A stretch of DNA of 64,000 nt, from NCBI GenBank assembly GCA_964106915.2, contig OZ066922.1, one strand, 5' to 3'. The DNA comes from Podarcis gaigeae. Its lineage: Eukaryota. Below the pieces are notes generated by a model. The model had not been told where the DNA came from. It ran no database searches and saw only the letters and a program-made list of their open reading frames with translations. The position numbers and the translations under genes were made by a program. This document shows positions 4,076 to 52,500 of this stretch, one piece after another. Within the stretch, counting starts at the first letter, position 1. Every line of letters starts with the position of its first letter.

Positions 4076-4615
4076 AAAACGTGGTGACAAAGCATGGGTC
4101 CACATGGATCCTCAGGATTTTTGCATTGGGTCACCCCAAATTCACCATCAGATCACATAGCATGTTCATGGCTACATCTTGCACCAAAAAAATCACGCAC
4201 CCACTGTTGCCTAGGGTCACAGTGGTGCAAAAACGTGGTTATAAAGCACGGATCCACATGGATCCTCAGGATCTTTGCATTGGGTCACCCCAAATTCACC
4301 ATCAGATCACATAGCATGTCCATGGCTACATCTTGCACCAAAAAAATCACGCACCCACTGTTGCCTAGGGTCACAGTGGTGCAAAAATGTGGTTACAAAG
4401 CACGGATCCACATGGATCCTCAGGATCTTTGCATTGGGTCACCCCAAATTCACCATCAGATCACATAGCATGTCCATGGCTACATCTTGCACCAAAAAAA
4501 TCACGCACCCACTGTTGCCTAGGGTCACAGTGGTGCAAAAACGTGGTTACAAAGCACGGATCCACATGGATCCTCAGGATTTTTGCATTGGGCTACTCCA
4601 AACTCACTGTCAGAT
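4076..4615. repeat. 154-bp tandem repeat, about 3.5 near-identical copies, inside the hAT element
   Basis: CACATGGATC recurs at 4101, 4255, 4409 and 4563. Confidence 0.95.
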
Positions 4616-9245: not shown

Positions 9246-9979
9246 TAAAACCACCACAGATATAAGGTGGGTTCTACACCTGTCCACCCCAGGTGTCAAA
9301 CATCCTGCCTGTCTCATCCTGGCTCTGTCCTCTCTATGAACCCACAGGCTGACCCACTCGGCTTCTGCCTGGAAATGCCCCCCAAGTGACGCTGCTCTTG
9401 CCAAGGCAGAGCAGCTGCACTGAGCGGACACCTGTAAAGGAAGCACCTGGGTGATTGGGCTTGCTGGGGTTGCCACAGGATCCTGTGGGGCAGCCAACCA
9501 GAGGGAGCCGCTCCAAGGGGAACCAGGGCCTGAAAGCGAAGCAGGGGCAGAAGTGGGTCAGCCCCCTGCTCAGCCGAATTCCCCCTTCTGCTGTCCTTGC
9601 CTCAGGCCAACTTCCTTCAGGTAGAATGAGCTGGGTTTGGCAGTGAGCAGCTTATTCCTGCCATTCAAGGAGCTCTCAAATGAAGCCCCCCCCCCCCCTT
9701 TCACAATCTGCCGCTCCAGCCCTCCAAGGAAGCAGCAGCTGCAGCCTCTAATCCGGAGGCCTTTCACCAACCTGACCTACATTCTCCGTCCGGAGAACAT
9801 GGGAGCCGCTTCAGACCCCCCCCCCCCCCGCCAGCTGGAGATGCGCCACCATCACTCTCGCCTACTTCGGATCCAGACGCCGGTCCAGAAGCATCTTGCA
9901 ACCAGGAGCAAGAGCAGCCTCTGGGCTGAGCAGCCTCGCCTTGGCACGGGCAGGATCTGGCCCTGCCCACCCCCCACCC

Positions 9980-27345: not shown

Positions 27346-28179
27346 AGGGATGAAACTTAGGAGCCCAGTCTCTCTTGTGCTCGAATCCTGCTTGCTGGTT
27401 TCCCACAGGCTGCTGCTTGGCAGCTGTGAGAACAGGATGCTGCTCCAGGTGGGCCAGTGGTCTCACCCAGCAGGCCCTGCTTATCCTTTTAGTTCCAACT
27501 AGCAGGAGTGGCCTGGCCAGTGGGGGTGGCTTGTGCTAGAAGTACCCCTCCCCCTGCTGGCCTGGCCACAATCCCAAACAAGCCAAGTTGCAGCAGGGAG
27601 CATAGGCTGTGAACCCTCCTGCCTGGCCCTGCCACAGCACCCGCTTAACTGCCTGCTCTGCAGCCTTTCAGAGAGCCTTTGTGTCTGTCTCCAAGGCATG
27701 TTTCTTCACCTGCTCTGAAGTGCATTTGTGCCCAATTGTTTGAAATTCACCAGAGCTACCTGGTTGGCATAATTGGAAGGGATCAAAGGATCATCTAGTC
27801 CCACCCCCTAAACATACCCAGCTCCTTCAAGCACTCCTTCTAAGGCTGTTTCCAGAGCCTTGATCATCTTGGTTGCCCTTCTGTGCACGGGCTCCGCATA
27901 AAGTGGGACAGTCGGAAGGGGACCCCAAGGGTCATGTAGGCCAATCTGGAGAAGCCCTGCCAGAGGACCGCACCATCTCTGCAGAAGGTGCCTGAAGTTT
28001 TATGCAGCGATGATTCTCCCGACCCCGCCTGTTACACAATCAAGCCAGCTTCCGGCTTCGAAGTGGAATTGTGTTATTTGTGTACCAAGGGTGCGACTCC
28101 GGCCTGGTTGTCGTTAGGGGAAAGACTGCAGCCCTTTGCCCCAAAGAACAGCCGCTCCCAGCTGGGCTTGCATCCTTCT

Positions 28180-29560
28180 CCCATGTCACGCGGGAGGCGC
28201 TGAGCTCTGCTCGCTGCCTCTGCTCCTTCCACGAGGGTCGACCCACTGAGGCTTCCGCTACATGCCCTCCGGGTCCCCTTCCAGCCTTGTACTTCGGTGA
28301 GGCGCCCCCTCGCCGCCCCAGCTCCACCTCCACCTCCCGGCCAGAAGGAGGCGCAGCTGTGGGGGGGGGGGGCGGAGGGACGAGCCTAAGCACCGCCCCC
28401 TCATGCTCGCGTCACGTGACAGCGACCCTTCGGCTGCCCCTGCGCCATGACTGCGGCGCCGCCTTTGCTTCCGAATCTTCGCCCTTCGCGGCCTCTTTGC
28501 CGCGGTCCCGCTTCTCTTCCTGCTGGTGCAGCCGGGACTCGCCTCCCGCCCCTCGACCTCTGGGGGCGAGGAAAACAACAAGGCAGTTTAACCCGGAAGT
28601 CAGATGGAGGCGCCTCCTCTTCCTGTTTCTATCTCTGTGGGCCACGGCGTGTCCGCTTCTTTTTCCGGGGCGTATCTCGGGATCCGGATGCTGAGGCGGG
28701 AGCGCCGCGGAGGTGCTTTCCCTCCTCCTCTCTGTGGCAGGAAGGAGGCCAGGGAGGCGCCCGGCGCGAAGAACGAAGAACGACGGCGTCCCGGGGGCGA
28801 GGCGCGTTCTCTTGACGAGAAACTCCCAGCCAATCGCCTTTCGAAGAGGCGGCGCTGCTCCACAAGGTCGAATCAGCGGCTGCGGCGCTTTCCTCGCCAC
28901 CAGCCAATGAGAGGAAATGGAGGCCTCCTGGGGGCGTGGCGGTGGGCGATGGTGCGTCCGTTGCCAAGGCGACCGCTTGAAGGAGGCGCTCGAGGCGGGC
29001 AGGTGAGCCGAAAGGCGGTGATGGTCCCGTGACGTCATCCTCCCTCGCTCTCCCCCTCCCCAACGGAGCGGCTCGCCTGCGGAACTCGCGGCCTCGGGAC
29101 GCGGCGCCGAAGAGCGGGCCAAGCCGCAGAGGGAGCCTCCACGCCCGGCGGCAGTCTGTCTGCGCGGAAGGGGGAGTGAAGCGCAGCAGGCGGGACTCGG
29201 CTCTCCGTCCCCGTCTGATCCTGCAAGAGCCTGGCTGGGGAGCGGAGCGGACCCCTTGGAAGGGGCTGGGGGAGCGCGTGACCCCCCATGGCTCCCCCCG
29301 CCAGGCCCCTCTGCCCCTGCGGCCGTGGGGTAGGGGGTGTTTCCCGCTGCCCCCCGCCTCTGACCTCGAGCGCCCTCTTCCACTCCCTCTCCCCCCAGGG
29401 ATCTCCCGGGGCTCATGGCCCACCGGCGCCTGGCGGAGGCGCTGCAGGTCTCGCGGGACTTGGTGGTGAGCGGGTGCGGCAAGGACGGGGTGTGGCCGGC
29501 CGACGGGGACTCCTGCTGCCCCAGCAGCCTGGCCTGCCTGCGGCAAGTGCCCCTTGGCAA
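28180..29560. promoter_or_regulatory. CpG-island promoter of the WD40 gene: E-box/CLEAR GTCACGTGAC 28411-28420, ETS CCGGAAGT 28593-28600, CCAAT 28830-28834 and 28904-28908, RFX X-box GTTGCCAAGGCGAC 28960-28973, CRE TGACGTCA 29030-29037
   Basis: CpG-dense region immediately upstream of the WD40 coding exons; motifs read directly from the sequence. Edges approximate. Confidence 0.8.
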
Positions 29561-32500
29561 GGATGCACATGGAATCTACAGCCTCTGCTTTGCCCCCGGT
29601 GGGGGGCAGCTGGCAGCCGGCTTTGGCAACGGCTCTGTGCAGGTGAGCGGGGACAGGGGGCAGCTCCCAAGTGGGCTTGCAGGGTGGAAGATGCGGAAGG
29701 GGTTGGCCTGAGGGGCTCTTGCTGGCGGATTGAGGGTGAGGGGACCTCTGGGGGCAATTGAGCCGCCCTGGGCTCTCCCCGCCTTAGCCCAGTGGGTGGA
29801 GAGACAGCCGAAACTCCTGCCCCCCTCTGCATGGGGCCCCATCTACCCTGCCCTCCTCTCCTTCCCCCAGCTGGTGGATGCCTCCAGGGGCTTGCCCGGC
29901 CCCTCCTTGTTCCCAGGGCACCGCACACGGCAAGCGGTCACTGCTCTGAAGTTCCACCGGGCGAAGCCAGGCCTGTTGCTGGCTGCTGGGGCGGATGGCA
30001 CCATCTCCATCTACGACCTGCTCTCACACTACCCTCTGGCTTCCTGGACAGGTATGGTGGGGTGGGGTGGGGTGGGGAGGGAGTCCAGCCCTCAGGCAGT
30101 GGGCCTAGGCTGGGGGACCCCTGCTGCTGCCCTGGACCTCCCCTCTCCTTGTGCTCCCCAGAGACAGAGAACGAGATCAACGCGATGGACTTCTGCCGGG
30201 ACGGAAGCTCCTTTGCCACAGCAGGCAAAGATCGCCATATCCGACTCTATGACAGCCACACCAACCAGGTGAGCCTGCAGTGCTGGTGGCCTGAGATCTG
30301 GAGATCTGCACCCTCTGGGTCCGTGGGATGCTCTTCGTCCGCCTGCCTCTAACGCTTCTCCCCCACTCTGCAGCTCTTTCACATCATGCATGCCCCAGAT
30401 TTCATGGCCGGGGATGAGTTCACACCCCTCAGCGGACACTCGCGGCGGATCTTTGCCTTGCGCTTCCACCCCACAGAGCTGCATCTCTTTCTGACGGGTG
30501 GCTGGGATAATTCTGTCAAGGTCAGTCCTCGGGAAGGCAATCTGTGTGCACGTGCACTTCCTGACCTTCTCTTGCTGATTTTCTGCACCTGTGGGGGGCA
30601 GTGGGTGGGGACCGGCCTCTGCCTCCTGCATACAGGGGGATACACAGTTCACCCTTTTGCTCTTCCCTGTGCCAGGTGTGGGACAAGCGGGTGTCCAAAG
30701 GTGCAAGGAGTGTGATCAACGGGCCTCACATCTGTGGCCCCGGGATTGATGTGAAGGTGAGGAGCTGGAAGGAGGGGAGCTGGGTTTCCCCCTCTGCGGC
30801 ACAGCGGTTCAGAAGAGCCTCACTGGCTCATCACTTTTATCTAGTGGGGCTATCATGGTCTAGATTTTTATTTATTTACTTATTGGACTTTTTGTCCAGG
30901 TTTCTCTTTCAAAAAAGCCCCGGGTGGCAGAACAGAAAAACTACAACAGAAAAACTTTAAAATATGTTTAAACAATCACACACTTTCACTGCTAAATAAT
31001 ATAAAGGTTGCCAGAAATGATGGAATTCAGGCATCAAGCGTCTGGGTGAACTGAGATGCTTTAACATCCTACCTAAATGTCCATAAGGAGGAAAACAGGT
31101 GCATCTCACCAAGGATGGGGGCATTTCATAAGCAAGAAGCCGCTCTGGAGATGGACTTATGGAGGGTCGGCACCAGTCGGGTACCCCCCCCCGCCTGCAG
31201 TCCCACCATCAGGACCTCCTCCTGCCAAGTGCAAGGTCTGAGGTGGTCCCTCTTGGAAGGGGGCATCCCTGAAGTCCTTCGACCCCAAGCCACTTAGGTT
31301 TTTGTATGGTAGTTCTTGGTTCTTTTAGGATTGGTGACCAAGGGCTCCATTCGTTGAGCTGGTGGCCCCCTTCTGCACTCCGTGCAGCTTCCACACACCT
31401 TCATTCGTTGAGCTGGTGGCCCCCTTCTGCACTCCGTGCAGCTTCCACACACCTTCAAGGGTGGACCCACATGGAGCATATTGCAGTAGTCCAAGCGGGA
31501 GTTCCCTGCAACTATTGCAGTTGAGGAAAAGCTGTGGCTGGCGGAGTCTTAGCCAGGTCCAAGCACTCCTCCACAGAGGCTGGTTGGCCTTCCAATGACT
31601 GGCATCATGATTAACTGTATTTATATAGCACCATCAATGCACGTGGCTTTGCACATTTAAAACAAGAAATTGAACCCTCAAGAGTGCAATCTAAGAACTG
31701 CAGTCTAAGAATTGCGAGAAGGGTTGCTCAGCGACTGATCTCCTCATGTTGCTATCTCTGGCGGAGGAGGGTTTCCTGCTTGTGGGTTTCCCTGTGGGGC
31801 ATTTGGCTGGCTGCTGCCAGAAGAGGGACTGGCGGGCTCACTGGCCTGACGGACCAGGCTCTGCTTCTGCTCTTAGTCCCACCGAGAGGGAGGAGGGAGG
31901 GCAGGGACGGGGGGCGGCAGCCTGTGCCGTTGGCCACTGTGAGAAAGGGGTGCTGGGCTTGCTGGGCCCCTTTTGGCCTGATCCGACAGGCTCTTCTCTT
32001 CCCAGAGAGAGGAGGCCACCAGAGAGGGCCTGGGCTAATGCCTTGGGGGGTGTGCCTGCACATGCTTTTGAGCCAGGAAGCCCGGGAGGGAGACTCAGCA
32101 GAGTTGACTTGTGCCCTTCTCTCTTCCTCACGTAGGGAGACCAGGTCCTGACGGGCTCGTGGGTACCCCGCAATGCCCTCCAGCTCTGGGACCTGCGCCT
32201 GTCTCGCCTGTGGCAAACCCTGCCCTTCCCCTGCAGCCCCACGCAGGGAGAGTTCCTCTACTCGGCCCAGTTTTGCATGGGGGACGTGGTGCTGGCTGGC
32301 GGCAGCGGGACCAGTGGGGCAAGCGCCATCCACATGGGCACAGGCCAGGTAAGAGGACCAGCAGCTCAGGATCCTGCGCCTGCTGAGTCACGTTGCCTCC
32401 TCTGCTGGCAGCCCCACTCCCAGGGCTGAAAATGGAGATGGGGGGTGAGGGGTGGAGCCCACCTGCATCCTTCCCCACACAAGGCACATGCCCTGAACCG

Positions 32501-32728
32501 TCGCTTCTCTCCTGGGCTGCTTCTGCCCCTGCTGGACGGGGCCTGCCTGCCTGCCTACTGCCAGGCTCCTTGCTGACCCCCCTCTTCTTCTCTCCCTCTT
32601 CCTGGCAGGTGGCCGGGGAGATTCTGCTGCCCAACAAGCCCGTCCATGTGGTGGCCTCTGCCCCCGGAAGCCAGGCTGTGGCTGTGGCTGGGGCAGGGGG
32701 CAACCTTCACTTGGCAGAGCTGCACTGA
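29415..32728 (+). CDS. Uncharacterised WD40-repeat beta-propeller protein, coding exons 29415-29642, 29871-30051, 30162-30268, 30374-30520, 30676-30756, 32136-32348, 32609-32728 (1077 nt, 358 aa). Possible upstream exon 28917-29002 spliced to 29399.
   Basis: GT-AG introns with consistent phase. WD-type repeats: IYSLCFAPGGGQLAAGFGNGSVQLVD; VTALKFH...LLAAGADGTISIYD; INAMDFCRDGSSFATAGKDRHIRLYD; GHSRRIFALRFHP...LTGGWDNSVKVWD; VLTGSW...LQLWD. AATAAA follows at 33015. Confidence 0.9.
30860..31510 (-). mobile_element. L2 LINE 3' fragment containing a perfect 54-bp tandem duplication (31348-31455)
   Basis: Minus-strand LDYCN motif (L2 ORF2 C-terminus) and a TTTA-rich tail; the duplicated unit starts at 31348 and 31402. 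Confidence 0.7.
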
Positions 32729-33014
32729 GCCCTGGAAGGAAGAGGCAGAGCATCCTGCAGATGCCCAGCCCTGGAGTTCAGGGGCAGGGAAGCCGTCAGC
32801 CCCACGCTGCCACGGCCAGGGCGGCAGAGCCAAGCTGCTGCCTCTTGCCACAGGGGTGATGAGGGTGGGTGCCACCCCCTTTCCCCTCCTTGCCCTGCCC
32901 AGGCCCCCTGCCCTCCCTACCTCAGTTTCCCTTGTTTGTTCTGCCTGAGGAGGGGGCTCCGCCTGGACCAGGGGATGCCTGGAGCAGAGGCTCTTCCCTC
33001 CTTCGGATCTGTGC

Positions 33015-33020
33015 AATAAA
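33015..33020 (+). terminator. WD40 gene polyadenylation signal AATAAA
   Basis: Canonical hexamer about 290 nt after the TGA. Confidence 0.75.
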
Positions 33021-37212: not shown

Positions 37213-37542
37213 CTGGAGGGGAGGAAGGGTAGATGGCACTTCAGTCTTTGCTTCTCCAGGCACCTTCCCCATCCTCTGGCTTCTTGTGGACGGCTGGTCC
37301 TGTGGCCCTGGTCAGCCTCGCTCCTCCCTGCCCCTCTCCTCCCTCCACTGGCCTTGTGTCCCTGGCCTTGCACCCATTCATCTGCCCCCCTTGCTCCCTT
37401 GCACAGGCACCCCCACTACACATCCTGCTCATCCCTTGGCACCACTAACGTCTCCACTTTCCCCCGAACACTCCCCATTCTGTTGGCCAAGGTGTCTTTG
37501 GCGCCTGAGGGCACCCACCCACCCGCCCGCCTCACAGCTCAC

Positions 37543-40500
37543 CTCCGCTTCACTGACAGCTTCTGCAAAACCACCCGGTACGTTTTTGCAAAGTGCACCA
37601 TGATGGGATCTGGGCTGGACTCAAACTCCTGGAAAACTAGAGCACAGCAGGTGTGCTGGTCACAGGGCGGTTCCAACAAGGCCTGGCTGCCACCAATCAC
37701 AGTGATGTTGCTCACCTGGCTAGGATTGCAGTCCTATAGAAACCCCTGGAGAAGGTCAGCCTCACAAAGCCCTCGCTCTGGACACAGTCCTGGGAGCAGG
37801 AGCAGCACCAGCCACCGGAGAACCCCTTCCACAACCCTCACGGTGGCCTCTGGGTTGCACAGGGAGGCAGAGGCTGCTTGATCCTCCACTGCCTCCCTCC
37901 AGTGTAGCTTTCACAGCGGATCCATGGGGCTAGGCATCGAGGGGGCCCATCCTGGCTCTCAGCTGCTACTGAGGTGGCCAGAGGGACTCAGGTTCTGTGG
38001 TTGCCCCGTCTGGCTCTTGGGGCAGGAGGCAGAGCCCTGGCCGTCTAACCCCAAACCAGCTACAGGGGCTTTCCTTCCCCTGGAGATGGAGACGGGGTGG
38101 GGGGCATCAGATGCTGCTGCCCTGCAGCCCCACCATCCTCTGGCCCAGAGGATGGGAGCTGTGAGCCCAACAACATCTAAGGCATTTCTAAGTCGTTTGA
38201 CTTTTAAAAGTCCCTCAATCACATGAAAAAATACAAGATGAAGATAATAAAGCAGAAGCACAACGTCATACCAACCAGTGAAACATGATTATAAAAGCAG
38301 AGAGAAGCTGGACTGCAGGAACAACAGGGTTAGGCAGAGGCCCCGGGACACACAAGACCCCTGAACCGATGGGTTGTTTCATGCCTGGTGGAGGGGGCGG
38401 GCATTGGCTCTAGCTCTGGGCCTGCACCAGAAGGTCTTCCTCCCCAAAGTGCGCAAAGCGGAAGGGCACCCCTCCCCCCTTACCTTTGTTCAGGTAGACA
38501 ATGTCCTCCTGCTCAAGGTTTTTTGAAAGCTCAGAGCTGTAGTAGTTGAGAGTGTGACCTACACAAAGAGGAACACGAGGCAGTTTGGGCTGCTTCTCCA
38601 AGGACTGCTCAAGACTCTGCTGGTTTGCAAGCGGAGAGATCTACAAGCCCAAACCCGCACCCAAGTCTGAAGGCACCATTTCAAATGCAAAGGCTTATTC
38701 ATCCTTGTGCGGCTCATTCACAGATTAAGGCAATAAACATTGGGAAAGGGGTCTCAGAAAGAGGGGAGGCCATGTCAGTGGAGGTGAGGCAATGTCAGGA
38801 GGCCTGAGGCTCCCGGTGGCCCTGATTCTGCTCCCCCCTCCATGGGGGTGAAGGCAAGAGCCCACCCACTACCTGTCTCCTGGGCTCCTTCTTACTGGCT
38901 GGGCTGTCACCCCCAGGGATGCACCCCCACACATCCTGCAGGGAGTCCAGCACACTGCATTGTGCTCCCTTTCTTCAGCCACAAAATAATGTCAAATAGT
39001 GAAGGTTTATGGGGCACTTGGGCATCCAGCTGCATTGGCAGAAGTGCTAACTCAGAGTAGGCCTATTTCCCTGTAAGGGAGAGGAGAATTGCTCACCTGT
39101 GAATCGGGCGGCTGCATGACTTATTTCTACCTGGGGGTGATGGAGGTATCCCAAGGCCTGGGATATAAAAACGTGGATGTCATCGTGGTGGTTCCTCATC
39201 TGCAGAGACAGAAAAGGCTGGCATGGATTGCGGAGGCTGCTTTGATTCCTCCTCGATTTTGAGTCTGTTTCCACAGGCAGGTTAACCTGCCCTCTGATCC
39301 GCGGGCAAAGGGGGATATATACATTTAATAAAGAATGATTATTGACATTCCTTTGCTGCTCCTTAAGCAAGCAACCAAGGCGGAAACACAAGAAGGGCCT
39401 TTTCAGGACGCGGCCCCTTGGTGCTGCAGCCCCAGCAGCCAGGTGCACCTTTAGGGAGACTGGCCGGCCATTTGCAGGGCCTGGGGAAGCAGAGACTCCC
39501 AAGCAAGCAGCTCTTTTCTCTCCCTGGCGAGAGGCAGGGCTGGGCCTACTGCATCACACAAGGGAAGCCCTGGCCCTGCAGATGTTGCAGAACTACAACT
39601 CCCATCAGCCCCACCAAACATGGCCAACACCAGGGAGGATGGGAATTGTAGCTCAGCAGATCTCGAGGGCCAGCGGTCCCCCACACCAGTCCCAAAATCT
39701 GTGCCAGAGATGCTCTGGTGTGGCTGTGTCCTTGAATTGGCCTCCTAATCTGGACTCAACCCCCCCCCCCCCTGCTGGGGCCAGAGGCTCCCCGTTCCCA
39801 GTTGCCTGCCTGGTCCAAGTGTCCTGGGATGATGATGATGATAATTTATATACCACCCTATACCCGGAGGTATCAGGGCAGTTCACATAAAAGATCAACA
39901 TAAAAACCACAATATATATAATTAAAATACAAACAACCCAATAACACCCCTCCAAAAACAGCCACATTTTAAAAGGGCATAGGATGTCAATCAATTCAAC
40001 CAAAGGCCTGGTTAAAAAGGAACACTTTTGCTTGGAGCCTAAAGGTGTATAATGAAGGCACCAGGCGAACTTTCCTGGGGAGAGCATTCCACAGACGGGG
40101 AGCCACTGAAGAGAAGGCCCTGTTCTCATAAATGAAGAGGGGCAGCTTGGAAATCAAACAGATAAATGACGGGCAGAGCCACATCTGACAGCAGGGGTGC
40201 CAACCTCAATAAAATATGGGTGGGGGGCAGCAAAGTCCTGTCCTGCATAATCAACCACATGACATGGTGCACCCAAACCATTTGAATGGCAATGCCCATT
40301 AACTTTGGGAAGGCCCAGCCCCCTCAAATAGTTTCGGGGAGGGTGAAGACCCCTCAGCCCCTAGGAATTGGTTCCTATGCTCAACAGCACAGCTTGCCAA
40401 GCTCTTAATCTGGAAACCTGTTTTCTGGGTGGGAGCACCTGTGGGAAGGGAAGGATCCTTTTTCTCTCCTCCTGTGTTTGTCCTCTGCAAGAAAAAGAGC

Positions 40501-43500
40501 AGCTGCCCTCCGCCCCAAAGCTGTGCATCTCCTTCGCTCACAGCAGCAGAAGACTGTGGCTCTGGAGGCCAATTCAAGGATGCGGCCGCACTGGGGGCAG
40601 CTTCAGAGACATCGACAGGGAGGAAATAAAAAAGGCTGGGAAGCTGAGAGGGGGCTGCTGAGCATGATGGGGGTCATTATGGAGGATGAGAAAAATGTGG
40701 CCAGATGGGGGCATGGAGACACATGAATGCCAGTAATTTTGTATCTATCTCTGAAAAACCAAACCTCAGACTCGGTGCCCCACTGACCAGGTATTTCCAG
40801 ACATTCACCACGCAGTTCCGGGAGTCATCCCAGGCCAGGCTCCGGAACATCAGCTTCAGGTGGGCCCACCCGAGGAAGCCCCCGCAGTGCAGGAGGGTCA
40901 ATTTGCAGCTCTGCAAGCAGAGGGAAAGCCAGGGGGTCACCCAGGGAGGAGGAGAGGCAGCTGCACTTGATCCAAAGAGACGCTCCAGAAGACGGCTCCC
41001 CTCGCTTTGCCAGCAGCCGGTATCTCCTTCCCTCTCTGCTCCCCTCCCTGTTGGCTGCCCAGATTCAGGCTGCTTGGTCAGGAGAGATGCTAGGAAGAAG
41101 GAGCGCTAGCTCACCATGGCCAAGTCACCAGCCCAGGACTGTCTGCACGGACCAGCAGCTCTCTCCGAGGTTTCAGGTAGTGGCCTTAGCAGAAACTGCT
41201 GGGAGGCAGCAGGGATTGAGTCTGGGACCCTCTGGGTGGGGGCTGCCCTGTGGAGTGGTGCCCATTTCCCTCAACCCTAAGGGAGATTCCAGCTGGATCT
41301 ACATTGATGCTCTAAACGTCTTAAATTAAAACGTTCTATAAAGCTTAATAGGAGTTTCCCATTGTCACGAATATCTGAGAGATATTGAGTGAATCCAGAA
41401 AATGATTAGAGTGAAAGGAGAGTAAAGCCAAGATAGAAGAAGAGATTAAAGAAATAATGAAATGCGTTTAAGCTAGATGGACAAATAAAGTAGTGTAACA
41501 GGAATGGCTGGAAGTCAAGTCACTTGGTGGGTGTCCGTGAGGTGTGTAGGTATGATGATATGTACAGTATAGGTAGGTAGTATATAGAGTAATGTAGGTA
41601 TGTTTTATGTTATGAAAATAAGGTAGTGTGTTGTGTATGTGTATTGTGTAAATGTATATGTATGTTGTTTTATATGTTAATAATTTTTTTAAAAAAGGAG
41701 TTTCCCATTGTCAGAGGCTTTTTTATTAAATTACGAGTGTCAATCAGTCCTCCACTGCTCACGATGTAAGGGGAGCAGTTTCCCAAAAGCTGCCTTTCAG
41801 TGAGTCAGACTATCAAGTCTGCCTAGCTCAGTGCTGCCCACACTGACTGGCAGCAATGGCTCTCCTGGCTCCAGGCAGGGGTCTTGCTCAGCCTTCCCTG
41901 CAGATGCTGCCAGGCAAAGCATCTTCTGCATGCAAAGCAGGTGTCCGTGACCCCAGAGCGCTGGCCTCGCCAGTGTGCTGGGCCTGCGGATCTGAGGAAA
42001 GGGCTGGGCTCCCTCCCTCGGGGACACTGAGGCTACTTGCCATGGCTACTGTGCCGTCTCGGTCCTTCAGGTGGAGCAGCAGAGAAAGGAGGCTGTAGAG
42101 GACTTCCTTCCTCAGGAGAGGCTTGTCTGCTTCTTTGGCCTTCATAACCAGCTGCCCAAACAGGGAGATGGATGCTGCACGGACGGGGCCTCGCTCCTGG
42201 GAGGGGGAACACCAAGGCGGAAAAGAGGCACCCAGGTCAGGGCCAGGACAACTGCGCAACACAGGGCGGAGATGCAGGAAGGTGGGTCCGGGGGGGGGCA
42301 CTGGGTGACAGGTGCTTCTCGCCCCCCAGCTCTTGGGGGCACTGTGCCTTCTCCAGCACTGTTTAACCGGTGGCCACTGGGATCGGGGTGGAGGAGAAAT
42401 GCATTTTGGCTTGCACCTGAAGCCAAATCAATCAAATCCACACTTTCTAAAGCAATGTGAGAACAGAACCATCCTTTGAAGTTCACATATATTCAAATTA
42501 TGTGATGCAATTCTCCAACCACTGTTTTCAAAATGCATACTTTGGGCAAAAGTGTGCACAAAAATGAAGATATTAGGGGAAACAACTGTCAGAGCTGCCT
42601 CTAGGTCCCAGCTCACAGAGGACCAACGCTAGGCTGTAGTAATGTACAAAAGTCTTTATTGAAGTTCAGTTTCCATTTCAAAGCCACAGCGTGCAGCTCT
42701 ACGTCTTAAACCCTAGATCGGCGAAGTCCCGTCTGAGTCTCCTCCCCTCTGACACCAGTTTAAGATCCTAGCCCTGCTCCACCTTTTCCGCTGCTCTCTC
42801 CTCCTCTGGGTCCTCCTGCCCGCTGGGGCATTGCCCTTTCTGGACTCTTCTGACGCTGAGTCGCTTAGCTCCTCCCCCTGCCTCCGGCGGGCTTTAGGAC
42901 CCGGTTCCCAATCCTCATTCTCTGCTGTCCCGCGCTCCTGTACATTTGAACTTGCCTCTCGCGCCAACCCAGTGACCTTTCTCCTAACCGTTACACTACT
43001 TCTGTCACTGCTTCCCTCTTCCGTGATACTGGCCGGATCTGACCTCCCCTCCGTTGTCCGACTCTCCGTGGTCAGCCCTGCCTCGTCTTCTCTCCCTGGT
43101 GGGGAATGCACTGACCCCGATACTTGGGACTCTTCCCCCCCACTCTGCTCTTGTGGGGAAGCTGGTCCTGATTTCCAACTACTGCTCTGGGAGTCCCTGC
43201 TGCCCCCTTGCTCCTGGGGCGTTCCCCTTGGGAACCCCCTACCCCTGGCCACTGGCGCCCCCTTCTGTGAATCTTCCGATTCGCTGGAGAGGCTCATGGA
43301 ATCCCTCGGGCCACTGTCCTCTTCTCCTACGCTCCCCTCGGATTCTTCCCCTTCGCTCTCCATTTCCTCTCTTCCCTTTGCCTCTGCTCCTGAGCCCCTG
43401 ACAACAACATTTCTCAAAAAGATTTGAACCTGTCCAGGCACTCAGGGGAAAGCGTCTCTGCCTCCAGGCTCCCTTCTCTGCCCTCAACTGGGTGCCTAAG

Positions 43501-46500
43501 CAGCAGCAAAGGCAGTGGCCAGAGGAGAAGAGGCAGGCCCACCCCCTCCCTGGAGGCCAGGGGCCCTCATGGCTGACGCTGACCCTCGAGGCGCTGGCTG
43601 CCTGGCCTTGCGCCTTTGCAAACATCCTCCTTCCCCAAGCGTCCCCCACTCACATCTTCGAAAAAGGAGCGCACATTAAGGGCCAGGTCCATGCAGAGGG
43701 GCCCGATCCCCTGGCCGTCCATCTCGTAGATGGCAGTCATGATGTCCTGCAGACCCTGCAGGATGTCTTGTTCGTGGCCACTGAAGACGGAGCCAATCAG
43801 GGTGGGCAGCTCCTCACGGAGAACCTTGACCTGGGGGGGGGAGGGAGAGAGGGGGGAGGGGCTCAGCATCTGCCACTCACACCAGCCACATCTGTGAGGG
43901 GTGTCAAGCACCCCCTTGCTCAGACAGCCTCCCAACTGCTTCCTCTCCCATCCCAGCTTTGTCCTGACCAGAAGTATTTATTGCCTTGGCAGAGCACCAA
44001 GATGTGGGTAGGGAGGAGAGTGGGCGAAGGCAGGGACACCCCCACCCACCAGGGGCTGGGTGAGGCAGGAAGCAAAGGCTTTGAAGGAGCGGAGGAGGTT
44101 TTTGGGGGAGTCCTGCTGACTCCTGATCTGAGAGGGTTTTCCTGGCTAAAAACTGAACCCCCCATGCCCCCAGAGTCTGCTGCAGCTGCGCTGGCAAGAG
44201 GCTGGCAGGACACTGGCTGTTCCTTCTCCCTGGTGCTTGTTCAGGATCTCCCTTTGGCCCTTTGGCCTGGGGGTTAGGGGCAAAGGGGCTGGAACTGCTT
44301 GGCCACCCCCTCTTGGAAGAGGCTACCTCCCCCCTCCCTCCAGGAGGCTGTGTCCCAGAGGGAGCCTCACCTGAGCTGAGCACAAGGGGCCCAAATGGAA
44401 GCCCTGTTGTGGGGGGCAGAGCATGAGGCCGCTCTTCAGCTCCTGGGGCCCTCCAAGCTCCAGCTGCTTCCTGGGACCCCCCCTCACCTTTGCCGGCTGG
44501 AAGACAAAGCTGCCAAGCCCCTTCAAGCACAGCTCCTTGATGATGGGGTTGGCGGCTGCTGATCCTTCCTCCAGGTGGTCTCGGAGGCTGAACCGGTTCA
44601 TCATCTTGACAGCAGATGGGCTTTTGAGGAACTGAGAGGCAGGAGGGAAGGCTGAGCGGAAGGACCCCCAAGCCCTGATGGGACCCCCTCCCACAGAGAC
44701 GCCAAGAGGCAGTCTGAGAGGAGGCGAGAAACGACTCAGTGAAGCCCCCCCCCCCCCGACTTGCCCTGGACTCCAGGGCCGTCCTTGCGAGAAACCCCTT
44801 TCCCCAGCCCTCCGCTTGCCCTGGCCACTCAGGGCTTCTGAGGGGTGGGAGGAAGAATCCAGCTGGCAGCTGCCCCTCTGCCCCCCTGGCACCGCCTCAC
44901 CTCGATGACGAGAGCCAGCGCAGTCATCTTTTTCATCTCGTCCTCCTCGCTGTTGAGGATGAGCGCCGCTTCCCCAAAGATGCCGGGGATCTGGGGGCTG
45001 TCGCACTCGGTCATGGCCCTGCTCAGGTGACAAGTGGAGAAGGCAGGATGCCTGGGGAGGGCCAAAGTGGGGAGGAGGAGCAAAGGCAGCGGAGAAGGGG
45101 AGCCGGGGAGCCGAGGGGGACCTGCACCCCCCAGGAAGGAGGCCTGGGAAGAGCTGCCTGGCAGGGCTTCCCCTCACCTGGCCATTAGGCGAGTGCCTTG
45201 CAAGAAGCGATCCGGGGTGCTCAGCACCATCCATCCCTGCTGGAACTCAATGCAGGCATAGACGGCCCAGTCTCCAGCCACAGAGAAGAGGTTCTTCATG
45301 ATCTCTACTGAAGTTCTGCAAGGGACCACCAGGAGTCAGATCTCCCCAGAACTCCCCCAAACTCTCCTCCTGCAAGATGCTGCCTTGGGGCTGGCTCTGT
45401 GATGAGGCAGAGAGGCAGGTGCCTCAGGCGGCAGGGGCTGAGGGGAGGGGACTGCGAGGGCCACATCGCCTGCCCTGTAGCCGCCATGCTAGCCTTTAGC
45501 CCTCAAGGGCGTGGGAGATGCTGTCCTTTCACCAGCACTGGAGTGAGATCCGCCTGCCAATCCAAAGGGCATCTCTATGCGCCTGGGGGGAAGGTACCAC
45601 CTTGCCCTTCACCTCATGCAGCAAAACGTCTTGAGAGCCAGCTCTGCTGCCCCATTTCTGAGCAGAATGTGGCAGGAAGAGAAAGCCAGAAGCCTCCTCC
45701 AGGCACCAGTGAACTGCGGCTCCCAAGTCCAAAGGAAGAGGCTTCTTCCCATTTTTAGGAGACGCTGCATTTAGCAACGACTTGAGAACAGGCAGGTGGA
45801 CTCAAAGGCCCCTCCTTCCCCGCTTTCCGCACAAAGAGCCCCAACCCACTTGTTGCATCAGCTCTTTCCTGCCTGCTGGAGGGGGCGGCCTCCATGGAGC
45901 AGGCAGAAGGACCTCCTGTCATGCTGCACCACACAGGCCCCCCTGCCTGCATCCCCCCTCCAGTTCTTCCTGCTGCAGGGCAGGACCCTCCCTGCCCCCC
46001 CCCACAACAGACGCACACCGCTTCCTGCTGGGGACCAGCCTGCCCAACCTTCCCTTACGGATCCTGTCAGGTACCTCTGGAAGCTGAGGGCACTGGTGTT
46101 TTCTCTGAGGAGGATTTCCTGCCTGACTTTCAAAGAGTCGGGCAAGTCCAGCTGCATCACATACAGGACCTGCTTGAGCAACGGGATGAACAACTGCAGG
46201 TGCATCTCTGCCAAGGCTTTGCGGTATCCTGGGATGTGGAAGGTCTCGTAGATGACATTCATGGCCTGGAGAAGAGGAGCACCAGGCACTTGTCCTCACT
46301 GGGCCTCTGCACCCAGCAGCTTATTCTTCTGGAACATGCCATGTCCCCTCAAGGCCATTCACGCCACTGTCGCCTGTCTCCAAGTGCCAGTGCTCACACC
46401 CAAGAGAGAGGGAGGGGCCCTCTGCCTAGAGAAGACCAGCTTCCCACCCGCCATCAGTGGGACACAGCCAGGCCAGGCCCCATTACTCACAGCCAGAGAC

Positions 46501-49500
46501 ATGGTGGCACTTTCTTCGTTGCTCTCCAGGGGATCCTTGACCTGAAGGTGCTTCAGCAGGAGCTGCAGGACTTGGATAGCCACCTGGGGGCCAGAAGCCA
46601 TCACTGTCCAGAGCTCGTTGGCGTGCCTGTGAAGTCAGCCCCGCGGAATGCAGGATCAGTCAGTGGCTTCCCCTGGGAGGAGCAGCAGCAGGGAGCAGAG
46701 CATGGCTGTGGGGGGCAGCCTAGCCACGGTTACCCAGAGAATCAAGCAGCCTACCTGTTGACAGGTATTGAGAAGGACAGGCAGCTCCGCATCACCTCCT
46801 CCATGTGGTAAGGGACCATGAAGGCCAAGGCCCTCAGTACCACCTTCCGGGTCCAGCAGGAGTGCTGGCACTGCTGCAGACACAGGTAGATGGCACCAAC
46901 GATGTCTTTCACCTGGGAGAAGAGAAGCGCTGAAGGCGGCCCAGCAGAGCTGCCGCCCTGTGAAGTGTGGCCCAAACCCAGGTGCCCCTTGGGCTCTCAG
47001 GGGAGGAGTCAGGCCAAGGCTCCTTGTTCTGGCCAGCGCCAGAGATGTTTGGGTCCAAATGCTCTTTGGTTTATGTGAGACCTCAACACACACACTCCAT
47101 TTTTGGCTTTTGTGTCTCAGTGGGGTTCATCATTTGCAAAGGGAAGGCAGCTCTAGCTCCTCAGTTGGAGTCACTGAGCCAGCAGGGTGGAGCAGAGGCT
47201 CCCAGGCTGAGGGACTCTTCTGACCATTAGCTATCTGAAAAGGGGAATCCCCTCACGCAAACCTGCCTGAGCTCTGAGGTTCCAGGGGAGGTCCTTCTGT
47301 TGGTCCCACCACCCTCCCTGGCATGCTTGGTGGGGAGGCAGGACCTGGCCTTCGTGGTGGTTGCGGCTCCCAGGCAATTTTAGAACTCCCTCCCTAGAGA
47401 AGCCATACTGGCTCCCTCCTTGTTGTGCTTCTGCCAGCAGGTGAAGACCTTCTTGTTCCAACAGGCTTTGGGGGACTGACTGCTTTTAATGAAAGGGCTG
47501 GTGCCATGCTGCTTTTATTGTAATTACTTGCATGGTTTTAAAAGACTTTATATATGCATAGAGTTTTACTTCTATCAGTGTTCTGCATTCTGATGACTGA
47601 TTTTTCTATATTTTTAGCTGTTCTTGGTTTTATCTGCAAGCTGCCTTGAGTCCCATCAGGGGAAAAGGTGGGGTATAAAGAAATCTAGAATGATAGTCAT
47701 AATCACCCTTTCCACCTTCAGTGCATGGTTCTTCAGAACGGCATTGAGCACTTCCTCTGCAGCCTTCAGCAGCTCAGCGTTGGAGCCTCTCAGATTATCC
47801 AGAACGGAGAGCAGGAAGTTTGTCAGCTGAGACGGGAACAGGTGGTCCTCACAGTGCTGCAAAGAGTAAAAGGTAAAATGATGGGCCGGACCCACCAGGA
47901 ACCCTCCCTGCTCTGGAAGCGTCCTGGGTTCAACCCCAGAAGCATCTCCAGATGAGAGGACCAGGGAGTAGCAAATGAAAGATCGCAGGACAGACCCCAG
48001 TGAGCCTGAGGGACCGCAATGCCCAGCCTGGCATAAAGGCAGCCTCTTTGGGGCCTTCTTTCAGGAGCAAACAGCTCATGGTGGACGCCTTTTCCTTGCC
48101 ACCCTTTGCTCTCATTTTAAACATCCCATAAAAAACGCATAATTGTTCCCTTCTTAAAAGCTTAGATCTACATCCCCTTGGGAAGGCAGTGAGAGGAGTA
48201 CGGCTGCTCTGCAGGTATGAGGCTGTGTGAGCAGAGGTGGATTTAGGGGAGCACAGCTGCTGGGTGAAGAGCCTTGGGGGTGCTTCAGGAGATTGAAAGG
48301 CAAGAAGTGGTGTGGGGAGCCGAATTTTGGTGTCGCACAGGTCCATGACTGGTGGGAGATGCTGGGTGGTTATCCACATGGTCATAGGGACCAAGCAGAA
48401 CCTTCTTGTTCTGGGAAAATTTTGGCCAAGCTAGAGTATTATTATATCAGAGATCATAGTCCAGAAAATCTGGAGGTGCCTGCCCATCAGCTGCTCCACG
48501 TGAACCCCCACCCTGACCCTCACAAGGACAAAACAATGTTTTTTGTTGGCTGCAGGCAAGTGCCAGGCCCCTCTCCCCACATCACCACCAGGGATCCATG
48601 CCATTGGGGTGGGGCTGGCATGGGATTCAGTTGGAGCCCATGCACAGAAGCCCAGGGGTCTGGAGCCTGGGGGGGGCACTTGGTGCAGGGCACCTGCAGG
48701 GCACCACCTGAACCTCCCTCCTCCCTCCTATAGATCAGAGATCATGTCCAACATTTTTTGTGGTCCTTAATGCTGGCTTTGCACCCCTGCTGTCACCACC
48801 ATGACCCACTCTCATGGCTCCACAGGGGGTGGCATGGGTTTGTGTGTCTGTGCCCGGTCCCTGCTCTGCTGTGCAGGGGGCAACGCATCCTGAGAGGCCC
48901 CCTGCTGCTTTTGCAGAGGCCCCTGATAGTTGCTGCCAACACACACTTTCTAGGGCTGGGGGAATTGTCTGGGTGACACGCAGAGCTGGATTCTGAAACC
49001 AGCCGCCATGGCTGAGCTGTCTGTCCCTCTGTGCGCCAGGGGACTTGTCACCATACCATGGCCATGTGCCAGCTGCTCTCTGGAATCAGAAAAGAAAAGC
49101 CATCCTCTTCCTGGGACCTCGAGTACCTCCTCACTGACCACCTCATCCTCTTCTGCTTGCTCTTCTTCAGCGCTGTTGAAGGAACAGAGGGAAAAGGAGA
49201 AGACTACTCTGGGCAGCAGCGACTTCAGCATTTGCCAGAAGCTGCATATTGAAGATGCCAGGCAGGCACACCCTTGCAGGGAGGGACTTCCACAATTTAG
49301 GGGCCGCCACACAGAAGACCCTCTCCCAGGCCAAGCCTCCAGCTTCTGCAGGTGGAGGAACTACCAAGAGGGCTCCCTCCACGCAACATCTCGGAAGGAG
49401 GCAGCCTTCCAGGTATTTGGGGCCCGAGTCATTTAGTGCCCTAAACACCAATGTAAATGTGGATTGGACCCAAAGGGTGGTCTTTAAGAAATCAGTCTGA

Positions 49501-52500
49501 CACGGCTGACACCCCCTCGCCCCCTGCAGGTGCGATGGGCAACTGTGGGCTCTGGCTCACTCACTATCTGGGCACAGCAGCAAAGAATCACAGAATTGTA
49601 GCATTGGGAGCAATGCCAAGGGCAATCTAGCCCAGTCCCCTGCAATTCAGGAAGCACAGCTAAAAAGATGTGGTGGCGGTGGCAGATCCCCCATGTCTTA
49701 CCTTGCCGACGCAGCAGGACCTCATAGAGGCAACTGACTCCTTGCACCGCAAAGGAACTGATACGCTGCACCGGATCATTGCACAGAGTAATCAGGACAG
49801 CTGTCAGATGAGCCAACTTGCAGAATTCCCCTGAGAACTGATTTACAGAAGGGAAGGGAAGGAGCTGCTGGCAAGGCACCCTCCGGGCTTCAAGGTGGTG
49901 CTGCCTGCTGTTGTGCATGGACTGGGATGCCCACTGCGGCGACCCAACCGCCACAGGACACATGTCTGGAAGCAGCTTGAGCAGGATCAATGCCATGCGT
50001 GCTCAGGAGAAATGCCAGGGGAGTCTGAGTGTGTCTGCTTGAGGGGAGCATTGACCTCCCCCCTCCACAAACCCATGCAGAGTCCAAAGAGGCCTTCATG
50101 GATTCTACCAACGCCCTGAGTCATCATCATCATCATCATCACCATCACCATCACCATCACCATCATCATCTTATTATTACTAATTCAAATTATAAACCAC
50201 CCTTTATTCAAAGATCCCAGGGCAGTGTACAATATTAAGAACTTAATTTACACAGCATAATAAAAAATAATAATACAGAGCATAATAAAACACAGCATGA
50301 TAATAAAATAATCATAATAGCACCCACCCACATGTAACAGGCCATAGATTGCTTAATGGTGAAGGCCTGGGTAAAGAGGACATGTAAAGACATCCAATGA
50401 TGTTGCCAGGTGAGCCTCTCAGGGGGGGAGCATTCCACAGTTGGGGAGCCACCACAGAAAAGTCCGGTCCTGGTCGTGCAAGAGAGCTAACTCTCCTGAA
50501 CGCCCCTGACAGTGTTGGAGGTTTGTCTGGATGCTGCAGCCACCGCTGTGGAAACATCTTCTGCAATTCCCACTGAAGGGGGGCAGAAGAGTCCTCAGGC
50601 CATGCGGGGCTGGAGCAAACAGCCCAGCACCATCCTGGCCCTGTTTTCCTCCCTAGGGAGCCAAGGTTTCCTCTGCCCCTTTCTGCCAGGCGCTGCAATG
50701 GGCTCCAGGGGGCACCGTGCCATATGTGGACAAAGGGGGCAATGAGGAAGGGGCTCAGTAGCCCTAGGGCTGTCCCTGCTGGGCTTCTGGCTGGGAGTGC
50801 GTGAGGAAGAGAGGCCTATTCTGGGCCCAAGGAGACTTTGCTGATACTCACGTCTGAGTGGAAATGTGTAGCGACGAATTTCAAGAGCTTCATGGCTGTC
50901 TCCACAGCATTCTCTCGCACATGGTTGACTTTTGCCTTCATCCAGGGCTCCATGAGCTGGAAGACAAAGGGGAAATTCAGGAAATGTGTCCTGGCTGAAG
51001 TCTGGGACTGAAGTTGAGGGTTGCAGACAGCGCTTCTCTTCCATCAGATTTTGCAGAATTAGCAGGACCAATTATTGGGTGTGTGTTTGTTCCTGTTAGC
51101 ATATTAGCAGTCACCTCTGCATCTTAGAAAACAAATGATTTATGTCACTAAACATGTCTCTGAACACCCCCTGCCCCCTTCAGAGATCTGCTTGGCATCC
51201 TGTGATGTGTGGCCTAAGAGGAGAGAGCCTGAGAACTACAAGAGGTGCCAGCACTTGGCAAAGGCACCAGAGCTCCTTCCGCTGCCCCCTCTCTAGCCGC
51301 ACACCCCCAGCATTGGTGCCCAGGGAGGCGGGCAGGTGAGGGGCTCTGGCACCAGCTCCCATGCTGATGAGCATGCAAAGGATCATGCTGCTTGCCTCAC
51401 CACCATTGCATTCCTTTGCATTCAGTCATACCTCCATCATGTGCTCCAGCTCACTTGGGCTTCGGTTTTCCAGCAGCAGGGCCTGCAACATCTCTTCAAA
51501 GCTGCTGATGGTCTGGAAGTAGAGTCCCTGGAGCAGAAAGAGGCAGCTGCCATTAACCTTGCACAGCCCAACAGAAAAGAGGCATGGGGGCTCTCTCTCT
51601 CTCTCTGTGTGTGATCTACCTACCTACCTACCTACCCCTTGCTAAGAGTTTGTGGGGTGCAAGACATCCTAAATCCCTGGATACAATAACAGAATGAGTC
51701 AGGCTTGGGCGAGTTAAACTGTTCCAGGCACTGAACCCCTGGATAAAGTGGTTATGTTAACAATACAAGCCAGGCCAAATTGGTCATCGCTTCCTGAGTG
51801 TGGGTCATTCAGGAAACAAAGCCTAAAGAGGTAGTTAGCAGGGGACAGAGTTGTGATGTGCTGACAAAGCCTGTGACAACTGTAGGAAGGAGTCAGAGAG
51901 CAGGGCTGATTTCTGTTTTGGATCCAAAGCTATTGCGCCTATTGGAGAAGCAAGATCTCTGGAGCTCAGGTTGTGTACATGGGTAAATGAACCATATACC
52001 ATAAAGATAGAAGGGGAAGAAATGGCGGCAGTAAGAGATTTTACTTTCTTGGTTGGGTTCCATAATCACTGCAGATGGTGACAGCAGTCACAAAATTAAA
52101 AGACGCCTGCTTCTTGGTGAAAAAGCAATGATAAACCTAGACAGCTTCTTAAAAAGCAGAGACATCACCTTGCCAACAAAGGTCTGTATAGTTAAAGCTA
52201 TGGTTGTCCCAGTATGTATGTATGTATCGCCGAAAAACTGATACTTTTGTATTATGGTGCTGGAGGAGACTCTTGAGAGTCCCATGGACTGCATTGGAAC
52301 TAAGTGGTTTCTAGCTGTGATGGGTTAAAAGAATATGAAAAAATGGGTTTATATAAGTAAAAATCTAAGATTGTAATAATTTAAGAATAAGATCTGGGTA
52401 ACAAAAAGAGGGAAAGAAATTGTTGAATTAATAATTTGATTTGGAATACAAAAAAGGGTGGTATGAGGAGGTCCGAGAAACAAGTAAATGAAAAATAAGG

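Follow-up and report, generated by a model that had tools for sequence, protein, structure and literature searches.

What is the WD40 gene that follows SEMA4F in the lizard Podarcis gaigeae? An earlier reading of a 64 kb stretch of DNA (hereafter the window) had proposed that it is an unrecognised gene for cilia or flagella, driven by an RFX X-box and possibly lost in mammals. I performed a computational analysis of the gene, its promoter, and its relatives. In this study, the window was searched exon by exon, while full-length searches were made with natural orthologues.

An intact seven-exon gene

As listed in Table 1, the gene lies 3′ of SEMA4F on the plus strand. The seven coding exons add up to 1077 nucleotides and encode 358 amino acids with zero internal stops, all six introns (6/6) are of the GT-AG type, and WD40 domain matches were obtained from coding exons 1 to 4 in an exon-wise search. 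The dN/dS ratio is 0.13-0.21, which rules out a pseudogene; the gene is under purifying selection. Thus, the predicted intact open reading frame was borne out. The same seven coding exons were found from lizards out to Xenopus, and the amphioxus orthologue also has seven exons.

Table 1. Features of the WD40 gene and its promoter in the window
Feature	Position	Strand	Remarks
CpG island	27900..29600 (about)		spans promoter, 5′ exon, first intron, and start of coding exon 1
Distal CCAAT box	28830..28834	+	promoter motif scan
Proximal CCAAT box, NF-Y-type	28904..28908	+	similar spacing to X-box in Lacerta, gecko, and turtle
5′ exon, 3′ part, probably non-coding	28917..29002	+	donor GTGAGC at 29003; junction in RefSeq P0183 and P0191
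GC box, SP/KLF-type	28931..28939	+	order CCAAT, GC box, X-box common to Lacerta and gecko
RFX X-box GTTGCCAAGGCGAC	28960..28973		counterparts in Lacerta, gecko, snake, and turtle
CRE-like TGACGTCA	29030..29037		start of intron 1; after donor in Lacerta and gecko (7/8 bases)
Coding exon 1	29399..29642, coding from ATG 29415	+	N-terminal helix, linker, blade 1 strands a-b
Coding exon 2	29871..30051	+	blades 1-2
Coding exon 3	30162..30268	+	blade 3
Coding exon 4	30374..30520	+	insert loop, GH dipeptide, blade 4 up to GGWD
Coding exon 5	30676..30756	+	near-invariant WDxR and GPHICG family motif
Coding exon 6	32136..32348	+	blades 5-6; LTGSW, LYSAQF, and AGGSG motifs
Coding exon 7	32609..32728	+	blades 6-7, stop TGA
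Poly(A) signal AATAAA	33015..33020	+	sequence context kept in relatives

There is a 5′ exon beyond the seven coding exons, because the junction of the 5′ intron (donor GT at 29003, acceptor at 29398) is used in the RefSeq models of Lacerta agilis and Podarcis raffonei. The gene start had been placed at 28917, where an upstream in-frame ATG would add 34 residues. This ATG was rejected as the conserved start, since it lies out of frame in Lacerta; the conserved start is the ATG of coding exon 1. At the other end of the gene, the context TGCAATAAA around the AATAAA is common to Lacerta, a gecko, a snake, and the Logan contig L001. Both the CpG island and the poly(A) signal that had been assigned to the gene were confirmed.

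An ancient WD40 family under contradictory names

The Podarcis gene is intact and belongs to an ancient WD40 family that carries no name of its own and whose proteins have a single propeller. It is already in RefSeq, under arbitrary "-like" names. Orthologues of this gene are called POC1A-like, WDR38-like, WDR12 homolog, coronin-7-like, RACK1-like, THOC6 homolog, all2124/alr2800-like, and SIT1, names which contradict one another within a single orthologous group of the tree; SIT1 is in fact the neighbouring gene in turtles. The tree was built in a fast mode, its deep branches are weak, and the insect clade is placed oddly; it serves only to show one vertebrate orthologous group. PF00400 scored above its cut-off (84 bits on the orthologue P0154), while the specific Pfam models for THOC3, WDR5, WDR55, CDC20, and Prp19 stayed far under theirs (86 bits versus 305 for THOC3; 39 versus 250 for WDR5) and the family-level Pfam score for EML did not exceed the curated cut-off. 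A named WDR orthologue was ruled out on these scores, in agreement with the original prediction that no named human WDR protein matches. An NCBIfam search found nothing, and a search of bacterial and archaeal genomes gave generic WD40 matches only (best E 7e-20). A literature search found no mention of the family gene ids, the Naegleria accession, PTHR47822, or the pattern. PANTHER PTHR47822, which collects uncharacterised WD40 proteins, many of them from ciliates and parabasalids, is possibly this family.

The predicted fold is a seven-blade WD40 beta-propeller. In a model of the Hemicordylus orthologue (pLDDT 84.6), an N-terminal helix (residues 2-21) is predicted to accompany the propeller, with 27 long strands in register and an N-terminal closing strand. 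The loops of the top face are more conserved than those of the bottom face (0.54 versus 0.40, p=0.006); in the model, they carry a ring of near-invariant residues, with a conserved aromatic pocket.

Is the protein a ubiquitin-ligase receptor of the DCAF type? This reading is compatible with a ciliary role: the WDxR motif of blade 4 and the N-terminal helix, as a putative H-box, would dock to DDB1-CUL4, and a substrate held in the pocket of the top face would be ubiquitinated. As in DCAF/DWD receptors of CRL4 such as DCAF1, a helix stands ahead of a seven-blade propeller (PMC3928422) and the WDxR arginine is near-invariant. Among 67 family members, the core DWD residues D217, W223, D224, and R226 (Hemicordylus numbering) are 96-100% conserved, R226 is kept in 66, and the 16-residue DWD box is matched in 57 if one position is left free. 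However, a strict match is found in only 21 of the 67, and the vertebrate members, lizard included, depart from the full pattern at position 15. The helix is animal-specific and is missing from protist, insect, and snake members, no DCAF family model scored above its cut-off, and a DWD box occurs in about a third of WD40 proteins, for example in 161 of 471 in soybean (PMC5460815). A DCAF-type receptor is rather unlikely, and binding to DDB1 is hypothetical here.

Less probable still is that the protein repeats along the axoneme as a structural subunit, in the manner of CFAP52, PF20, or WDR78. WD40 propellers are frequent among axonemal parts, and the RFX promoter and the flagellate distribution described below would suit such a subunit. 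However, none of the 177,635 PDB sequences is a family member, the CFAP52 chains from several axoneme structures match generically only, and a Foldseek search against solved structures, axonemes included, gave nothing but generic WD40 matches at 13-21% identity. The top PDB match for exon 4 was the dynein-transport adaptor DAW1/ODA16, yet this is generic repeat similarity with no single stretch significant. Like the Podarcis protein, DAW1/ODA16 is a stand-alone WD40 propeller, and it has the RFX-type ciliary gene and the adaptor role that are proposed for the Podarcis protein; at 16% identity by structure, the likeness is a functional analogy only. A further difference is that mammals and fish have retained DAW1.

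The promoter and its X-box

In 200-bp windows, the CpG island has a GC content of 0.55-0.75 and a CpG observed/expected ratio of mostly 0.54-1.1, versus 0.08-0.36 outside. Besides the island, the promoter has CCAAT, GC box, ETS, and CRE motifs, while the motif scan found neither a TATA nor a forkhead motif. The distal CCAAT box is deleted in Lacerta and thus is not essential.

The X-box and the GTGAGC donor that it precedes were both confirmed at their predicted positions, 29 bases apart, which puts the X-box close to the putative transcription start. On the minus strand, the X-box matches GTNRCCNNRGYAAC with 0 mismatches. It is the single occurrence of the perfect 14-bp RFX consensus in the whole 64 kb, and the chance expectation of such a match is about 0.0015 per kb of this CpG island. 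In Lacerta, gecko, snake, and turtle, a counterpart precedes the start codon, and Xenopus and amphioxus have weak ones. When the upstream kilobase was shuffled, the site was equalled in 0/300 shuffles for Podarcis, gecko, and turtle, in 1/300 for snake, and in 15/300 for Lacerta. The candidates of Xenopus and amphioxus are not above chance, as 155/300 and 132/300 shuffles do as well. Thus, the conservation of the X-box among orthologous promoters held for the amniotes, with significant sites in Podarcis, gecko, snake, and turtle. The upstream DNA of gecko and Podarcis does not align apart from the X-box, which is the best-kept promoter element across amniotes.

The RFX site is the most enriched motif in the promoters of motile-cilia genes from sea anemone to human (PMC5245798). 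In mouse ependymal cells, RFX1 was found at 7,440 sites and RFX3 at 9,318 sites (PMC7498320), so that an X-box is not specific to cilia. Might this be an RFX-bound gene with no ciliary function, encoding a general cytoplasmic or nuclear WD40 adaptor, whose link to flagellates merely reflects which genomes were sampled? The thousands of RFX sites per genome and the promoter of housekeeping type speak for this, as does the lack of a family match in axoneme structures, while the preservation of the X-box above all other amniote promoter elements speaks against it. The distribution of the gene bears on the same question.

Distribution, apparent losses, and a possible role

Orthologues were found by protein searches in squamates, turtles, alligators, all amphibian orders, lungfish, coelacanth, and sharks, as well as in amphioxus, a tunicate, echinoderms, molluscs, and cnidarians. 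The gene had been described as kept in reptiles; reptiles do have it, but so do amphibians, lungfish, coelacanth, sharks, and most invertebrate phyla. More distant members were found in an insect and in the protists Naegleria (jgi_61394), Tetraselmis, Pigoraptor, and Salpingoeca, as the proposed likeness to WD40 proteins of flagellated protists had anticipated. These four protists are flagellated lineages of four separate groups. The family is thus present in flagellated eukaryotes from several supergroups, i.e. in four protists and animals. No non-flagellated organism was found among the named matches, and most protist-like matches carry no taxon name. A non-ciliary WD40 adaptor would be consistent with there being just four nameable non-animal members. 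However, non-flagellated organisms are absent from the named matches, and a triple loss in vertebrates would be rare for a housekeeping WD40 gene. On balance, I regard the non-ciliary reading as unlikely, though a serious competitor.

Was the gene really lost in vertebrates? The original prediction had taken the human SEMA4F-HK2 interval as a sign of loss. The SEMA4F neighbourhood is confined to lizards, so that this interval is uninformative. Synteny with SEMA4F beyond lizards was rejected; the turtle orthologue has a BTB-zinc-finger gene and a SIT1-like gene as neighbours, and the Xenopus orthologue has clusterin. No mammalian orthologue was found by the protein searches, as the original prediction had supposed. 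In a word search of proteins in which 8,000 candidates were scored, mammals, birds, and ray-finned fish were 0 among 108 matches, and none was found among the best 150 of 208 representative matches. Vertebrate-like matches without a name turned out to come from salamander, lungfish, frog, lizard, and alligator. Birds and ray-finned fish, too, appear to be without the gene. Mammals, birds, and ray-finned fish all possess motile cilia and sperm, which speaks against the ciliary reading.

The absence could be an artefact of detection, if the gene is missing from assemblies or annotations or has diverged. The gene has a high GC content, and in all tetrapods examined it sits close to the end of a chromosome; such genes are a class often missed in bird assemblies, and the searches covered proteins only, within the limits given above. 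However, the same word search recovered sharks at 50% identity, cnidarians at 35%, and transcript-derived proteins of salamander and lungfish, and hundreds of annotated mammals and teleosts would need to have been overlooked jointly. An artefact is thus the least probable of the alternatives.

Relatives in flagellated protists and a conserved RFX-type promoter suggest that the protein is probably one of cilia or the sperm tail. Judged by promoter and distribution, an RFX-driven adaptor of cilia or flagella is the best reading and a reasonably probable one. RFX2/3 would bind the X-box together with NF-Y and SP factors and activate transcription in ciliated cells and spermatids. The WD40 protein would have no enzymatic activity and would act as an adaptor, holding a peptide of one partner in the pocket of the top face and docking on a second partner via the arginine of the bottom face or the N-terminal helix peculiar to animals. 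It would more likely help to assemble, move, or turn over the parts of cilia, or work in a region that varies between lineages (tip, base, or rootlet), than form a repeating piece of the doublet. Separate losses may then have occurred in mammals, birds, and ray-finned fish. A fuller proposal is tentative and may well be wrong in part: the protein might belong to cilia or flagella and date back to LECA, having gone unrecognised because human, mouse, chicken, and zebrafish lost it in three separate events. It would possibly act as the receptor of a ciliary ubiquitin ligase or as an adaptor for cargo, in the service of a structure with which mammals, birds, and ray-finned fish dispense.

A precedent for a motile-cilia protein that mammals are without is Jhc1 of the distal ciliary tip in Xenopus (bioRxiv 10.64898/2026.02.04.703868). 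Jhc1 is likewise an uncharacterised LOC gene of non-mammalian vertebrates. It differs in being a vertebrate-specific thiamine-triphosphatase-like pseudoenzyme that is present in bony fish and has been placed in cilia experimentally, whereas the WD40 family has protist members, gave no match in birds or ray-finned fish, and has a ciliary role predicted from sequence. Ciliome catalogues are built around the genes of human, mouse, and zebrafish and so would pass over an ancient component that none of these species has. If the ciliary reading is true, three independent losses in vertebrates would mark a lineage-variable feature of cilia or sperm; if not, there is still a deeply conserved, unnamed WD40 family with many wrong RefSeq names. 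The gene is intact in Xenopus, whose multiciliated skin offers a direct test system.

Among Atlas clusters, the nearest with recorded taxa are of arthropod, ciliate, rotifer, and mollusc origin, in keeping with the ciliary reading, and one ciliate-dominated cluster may serve as a lead. Fungal WD40 clusters appear among the lower Atlas rows and, if related, would speak against it. The alligator copy is possibly decaying.

Gene model and family

The original prediction of an intact seven-exon, 358-aa WD40 ORF with its own CpG island and poly(A) signal was borne out exactly. Its start at 28917 did not hold as the conserved one: the ATG there is in frame and would extend the protein by 34 aa, but the frame is not kept in Lacerta. 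Two more upstream ATGs, at 28907 and 28949, are both out of frame with the ORF. In RefSeq, Lacerta agilis and Podarcis raffonei both have models that span the same first-intron junction. The gene is already present in RefSeq as an uncharacterised gene, with exon identities of 96-100% to Podarcis muralis LOC114604519 and the P. raffonei models and 92-100% to L. agilis LOC117052641, which mark the window as wall-lizard DNA; a literature search found no paper on the gene or its family. Coding intron 5 carries a perfect 54-bp tandem duplication (31348-31457). RefSeq isoforms among the orthologous protein models (P0181, P0178, P0197, and P0210) skip exon 5 in Zootoca, Crotalus, and Alligator and exon 4 in P. 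muralis without breaking the frame; such skipping would delete part of a blade plus the WDxR or GGWD motif.

Features of the WD40 gene and its surroundings in the window
Feature	Position	Strand	Remark
CpG island	~27900-29600		
Upstream ATG	28917-28919	+	in frame
RFX X-box	28960-28973	-	zero mismatches to RFX consensus GTNRCCNNRGYAAC
First-intron donor to acceptor	29003 to 29398	+	upstream of coding exons
Coding exons (n=7)	29415-32728	+	introns all GT-AG; 358 codons, no stop inside
AATAAA poly(A) signal	33015	+	
MROH2B-like (Maestro HEAT) gene	~37500-51000	-	tail-to-tail with WD40 gene

Seven exons are common to the window gene and its Lacerta, gecko, snake, turtle, and Xenopus orthologues, and the amphioxus orthologue has seven too. 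The dN/dS values of the window gene are 0.14 (Lacerta), 0.13 (gecko), 0.14 (snake), 0.21 (turtle), and 0.17 (Xenopus). Homologues were searched for exon by exon and then with natural full-length relatives as queries. Exon 6 as a query retrieved orthologous genomic contigs, and an HMM search from it, run unindexed, yielded 208 representatives. A word search of protein sequences with a 19-sequence profile recovered 108 proteins (E up to 1e-40). The gene had been described as kept in reptiles, which is true of squamates, turtles, and alligators but too narrow: the matches include frogs, axolotl, caecilians, lungfish, coelacanth, sharks, chimaera, amphioxus, Styela, echinoderms, Priapulus, molluscs, and cnidarians. 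As suspected for mammals, no mammal, bird, or ray-finned fish is among the 108 matches (8,000 protein candidates scored), and unnamed vertebrate-like matches could be assigned to salamander, lungfish, frog, lizard, and alligator. The vertebrate family sequences form one supported clade. The expected resemblance to proteins of flagellated protists was also found. Most protist-like matches are nameless; the distant members assignable to an organism are from the wasp Orussus, Naegleria gruberi, Tetraselmis, Pigoraptor, and Salpingoeca, all of which have flagellated stages. Among ESM Atlas clusters that have taxa on record, the nearest are those of arthropods, ciliates, rotifers, and molluscs, and prokaryotes yielded generic WD40 proteins but no family member.

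The alligator models P0200, P0204, and P0279 begin at blade 3 or later, without exons 1-2, and the A. sinensis model has Ala where the GH dipeptide otherwise has a near-invariant His. These models possibly reflect archosaur decay preceding the bird loss, or incomplete annotation.

The X-box

The X-box predicted just 5′ of the GTGAGC donor proved to be a perfect consensus match, the sole zero-mismatch 14-mer in the 64-kb window, 29 bases from the donor; the chance expectation is ~0.0015 per kb of CpG island. Counterparts precede the start codon in four other reptiles: the Lacerta site has one change, those of gecko and snake match the consensus perfectly and differ in the central bases alone, and the turtle site departs from the full palindrome at one base. 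When each upstream region was shuffled 300 times, equally good sites arose in 0 (Podarcis), 15 (Lacerta), 0 (gecko), 1 (snake), and 0 (turtle) shuffles. Support for the predicted conservation does not rise above chance in Xenopus and amphioxus, whose candidates are leads only, since 155/300 and 132/300 shuffles equal them. The gecko retains the order CCAAT, GC box, X-box, donor, CRE even though its upstream DNA gives no blastn alignment to that of the lizard. Judged from these comparisons, the X-box is under selection, and RFX, whose binding I infer from the consensus match, would act on the gene through it.

The snake Ahaetulla (locus L009:9965-10117) has lost its 5′ exon and intron as well as the N-terminal helix but retains the X-box, whose start lies 36 bases before the ATG. 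In the hawksbill turtle (L005:9499-9960), a minisatellite with a 41-43-bp unit lies between the promoter and the ATG and contains ten perfect X-box consensus matches. A 154-bp tandem repeat in the window (4076-4615, 3.5 copies) holds three X-box-like 15-mers on the minus strand.

Protein and possible role

Since the X-box is conserved and the distribution of named members is flagellate, a ciliary or sperm-tail role is the best reading and a reasonably probable one. Across animals, promoters of motile-cilia genes have RFX sites as their leading motif (PMC5245798). RFX factors also occupy thousands of sites (PMC7498320), which would suit a non-ciliary role, though this seems rather unlikely. This is a real, conserved gene and a new candidate for the class of ciliary WD40 genes driven by RFX. 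Motile-cilia proteins missing from mammals are already a known kind, as Jhc1 is one (bioRxiv 10.64898/2026.02.04.703868).

In an AlphaFold2 model of the orthologue from Hemicordylus (64-97% identical per exon to the window gene; pLDDT 84.6), a seven-blade propeller follows an N-terminal helix (2-21) and a disordered linker. Over 67 members, loop conservation is 0.54 on the top face versus 0.40 on the bottom (p=0.006). WD40 adaptors usually bind peptides on the top face. Top-face residues conserved at 88-100% are E137, N140, D160, W216, G237-P238, C241, S256-W257, Y290, and GGSG 303-306; the bottom-face R226 of WDxR is present in 66/67. The RRRL-type helix is common from cnidarians to lizards, and protist, insect, and snake members are without it. 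In keeping with the claim that no named WDR matches, the lizard protein hit no specific Pfam family at cut-off. Searches of the PDB, its axoneme structures among them, recovered none of the family by sequence or by structure. An accessory adaptor is favoured over a core axonemal repeat subunit, because the protein is missing from solved axonemes and was lost in three lineages that keep motile cilia; it might serve in assembly, in transport, in turnover, or in a variable region, for instance the tip or base. A DCAF-type role, a variant of the adaptor reading, would fit the helix and WDxR (PMC3928422), but one third of WD40 proteins also match the motif (PMC5460815), and I consider it quite unlikely. 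DCAF and DAW1/ODA16 are at best working analogues; the protein belonged to neither by any test run.

Chromosomal neighbourhood

The Lacerta gene order is that of the window: SEMA4F, the WD40 gene, then the MROH2B-like gene on the opposite strand. The proposed synteny with SEMA4F holds in Lacerta and in gecko, where SEMA4F is still upstream, and one snake keeps MROH2B downstream; it fails in turtle, whose neighbours are a BTB-zinc-finger gene (presumably ZBTB9-like) and a SIT1-like gene, and in Xenopus, whose neighbour is clusterin. Thus, the gene has moved, each time staying close to a chromosome end, and the human SEMA4F-HK2 interval, formerly taken as a sign of loss, is uninformative. All five tetrapods compared (loci L004, L005, L006, L008, and L009) have it close to a chromosome end despite differing neighbours, at ~0.03-0.2 Mb in squamates, 0.9 Mb in turtle, and 4 Mb in Xenopus.
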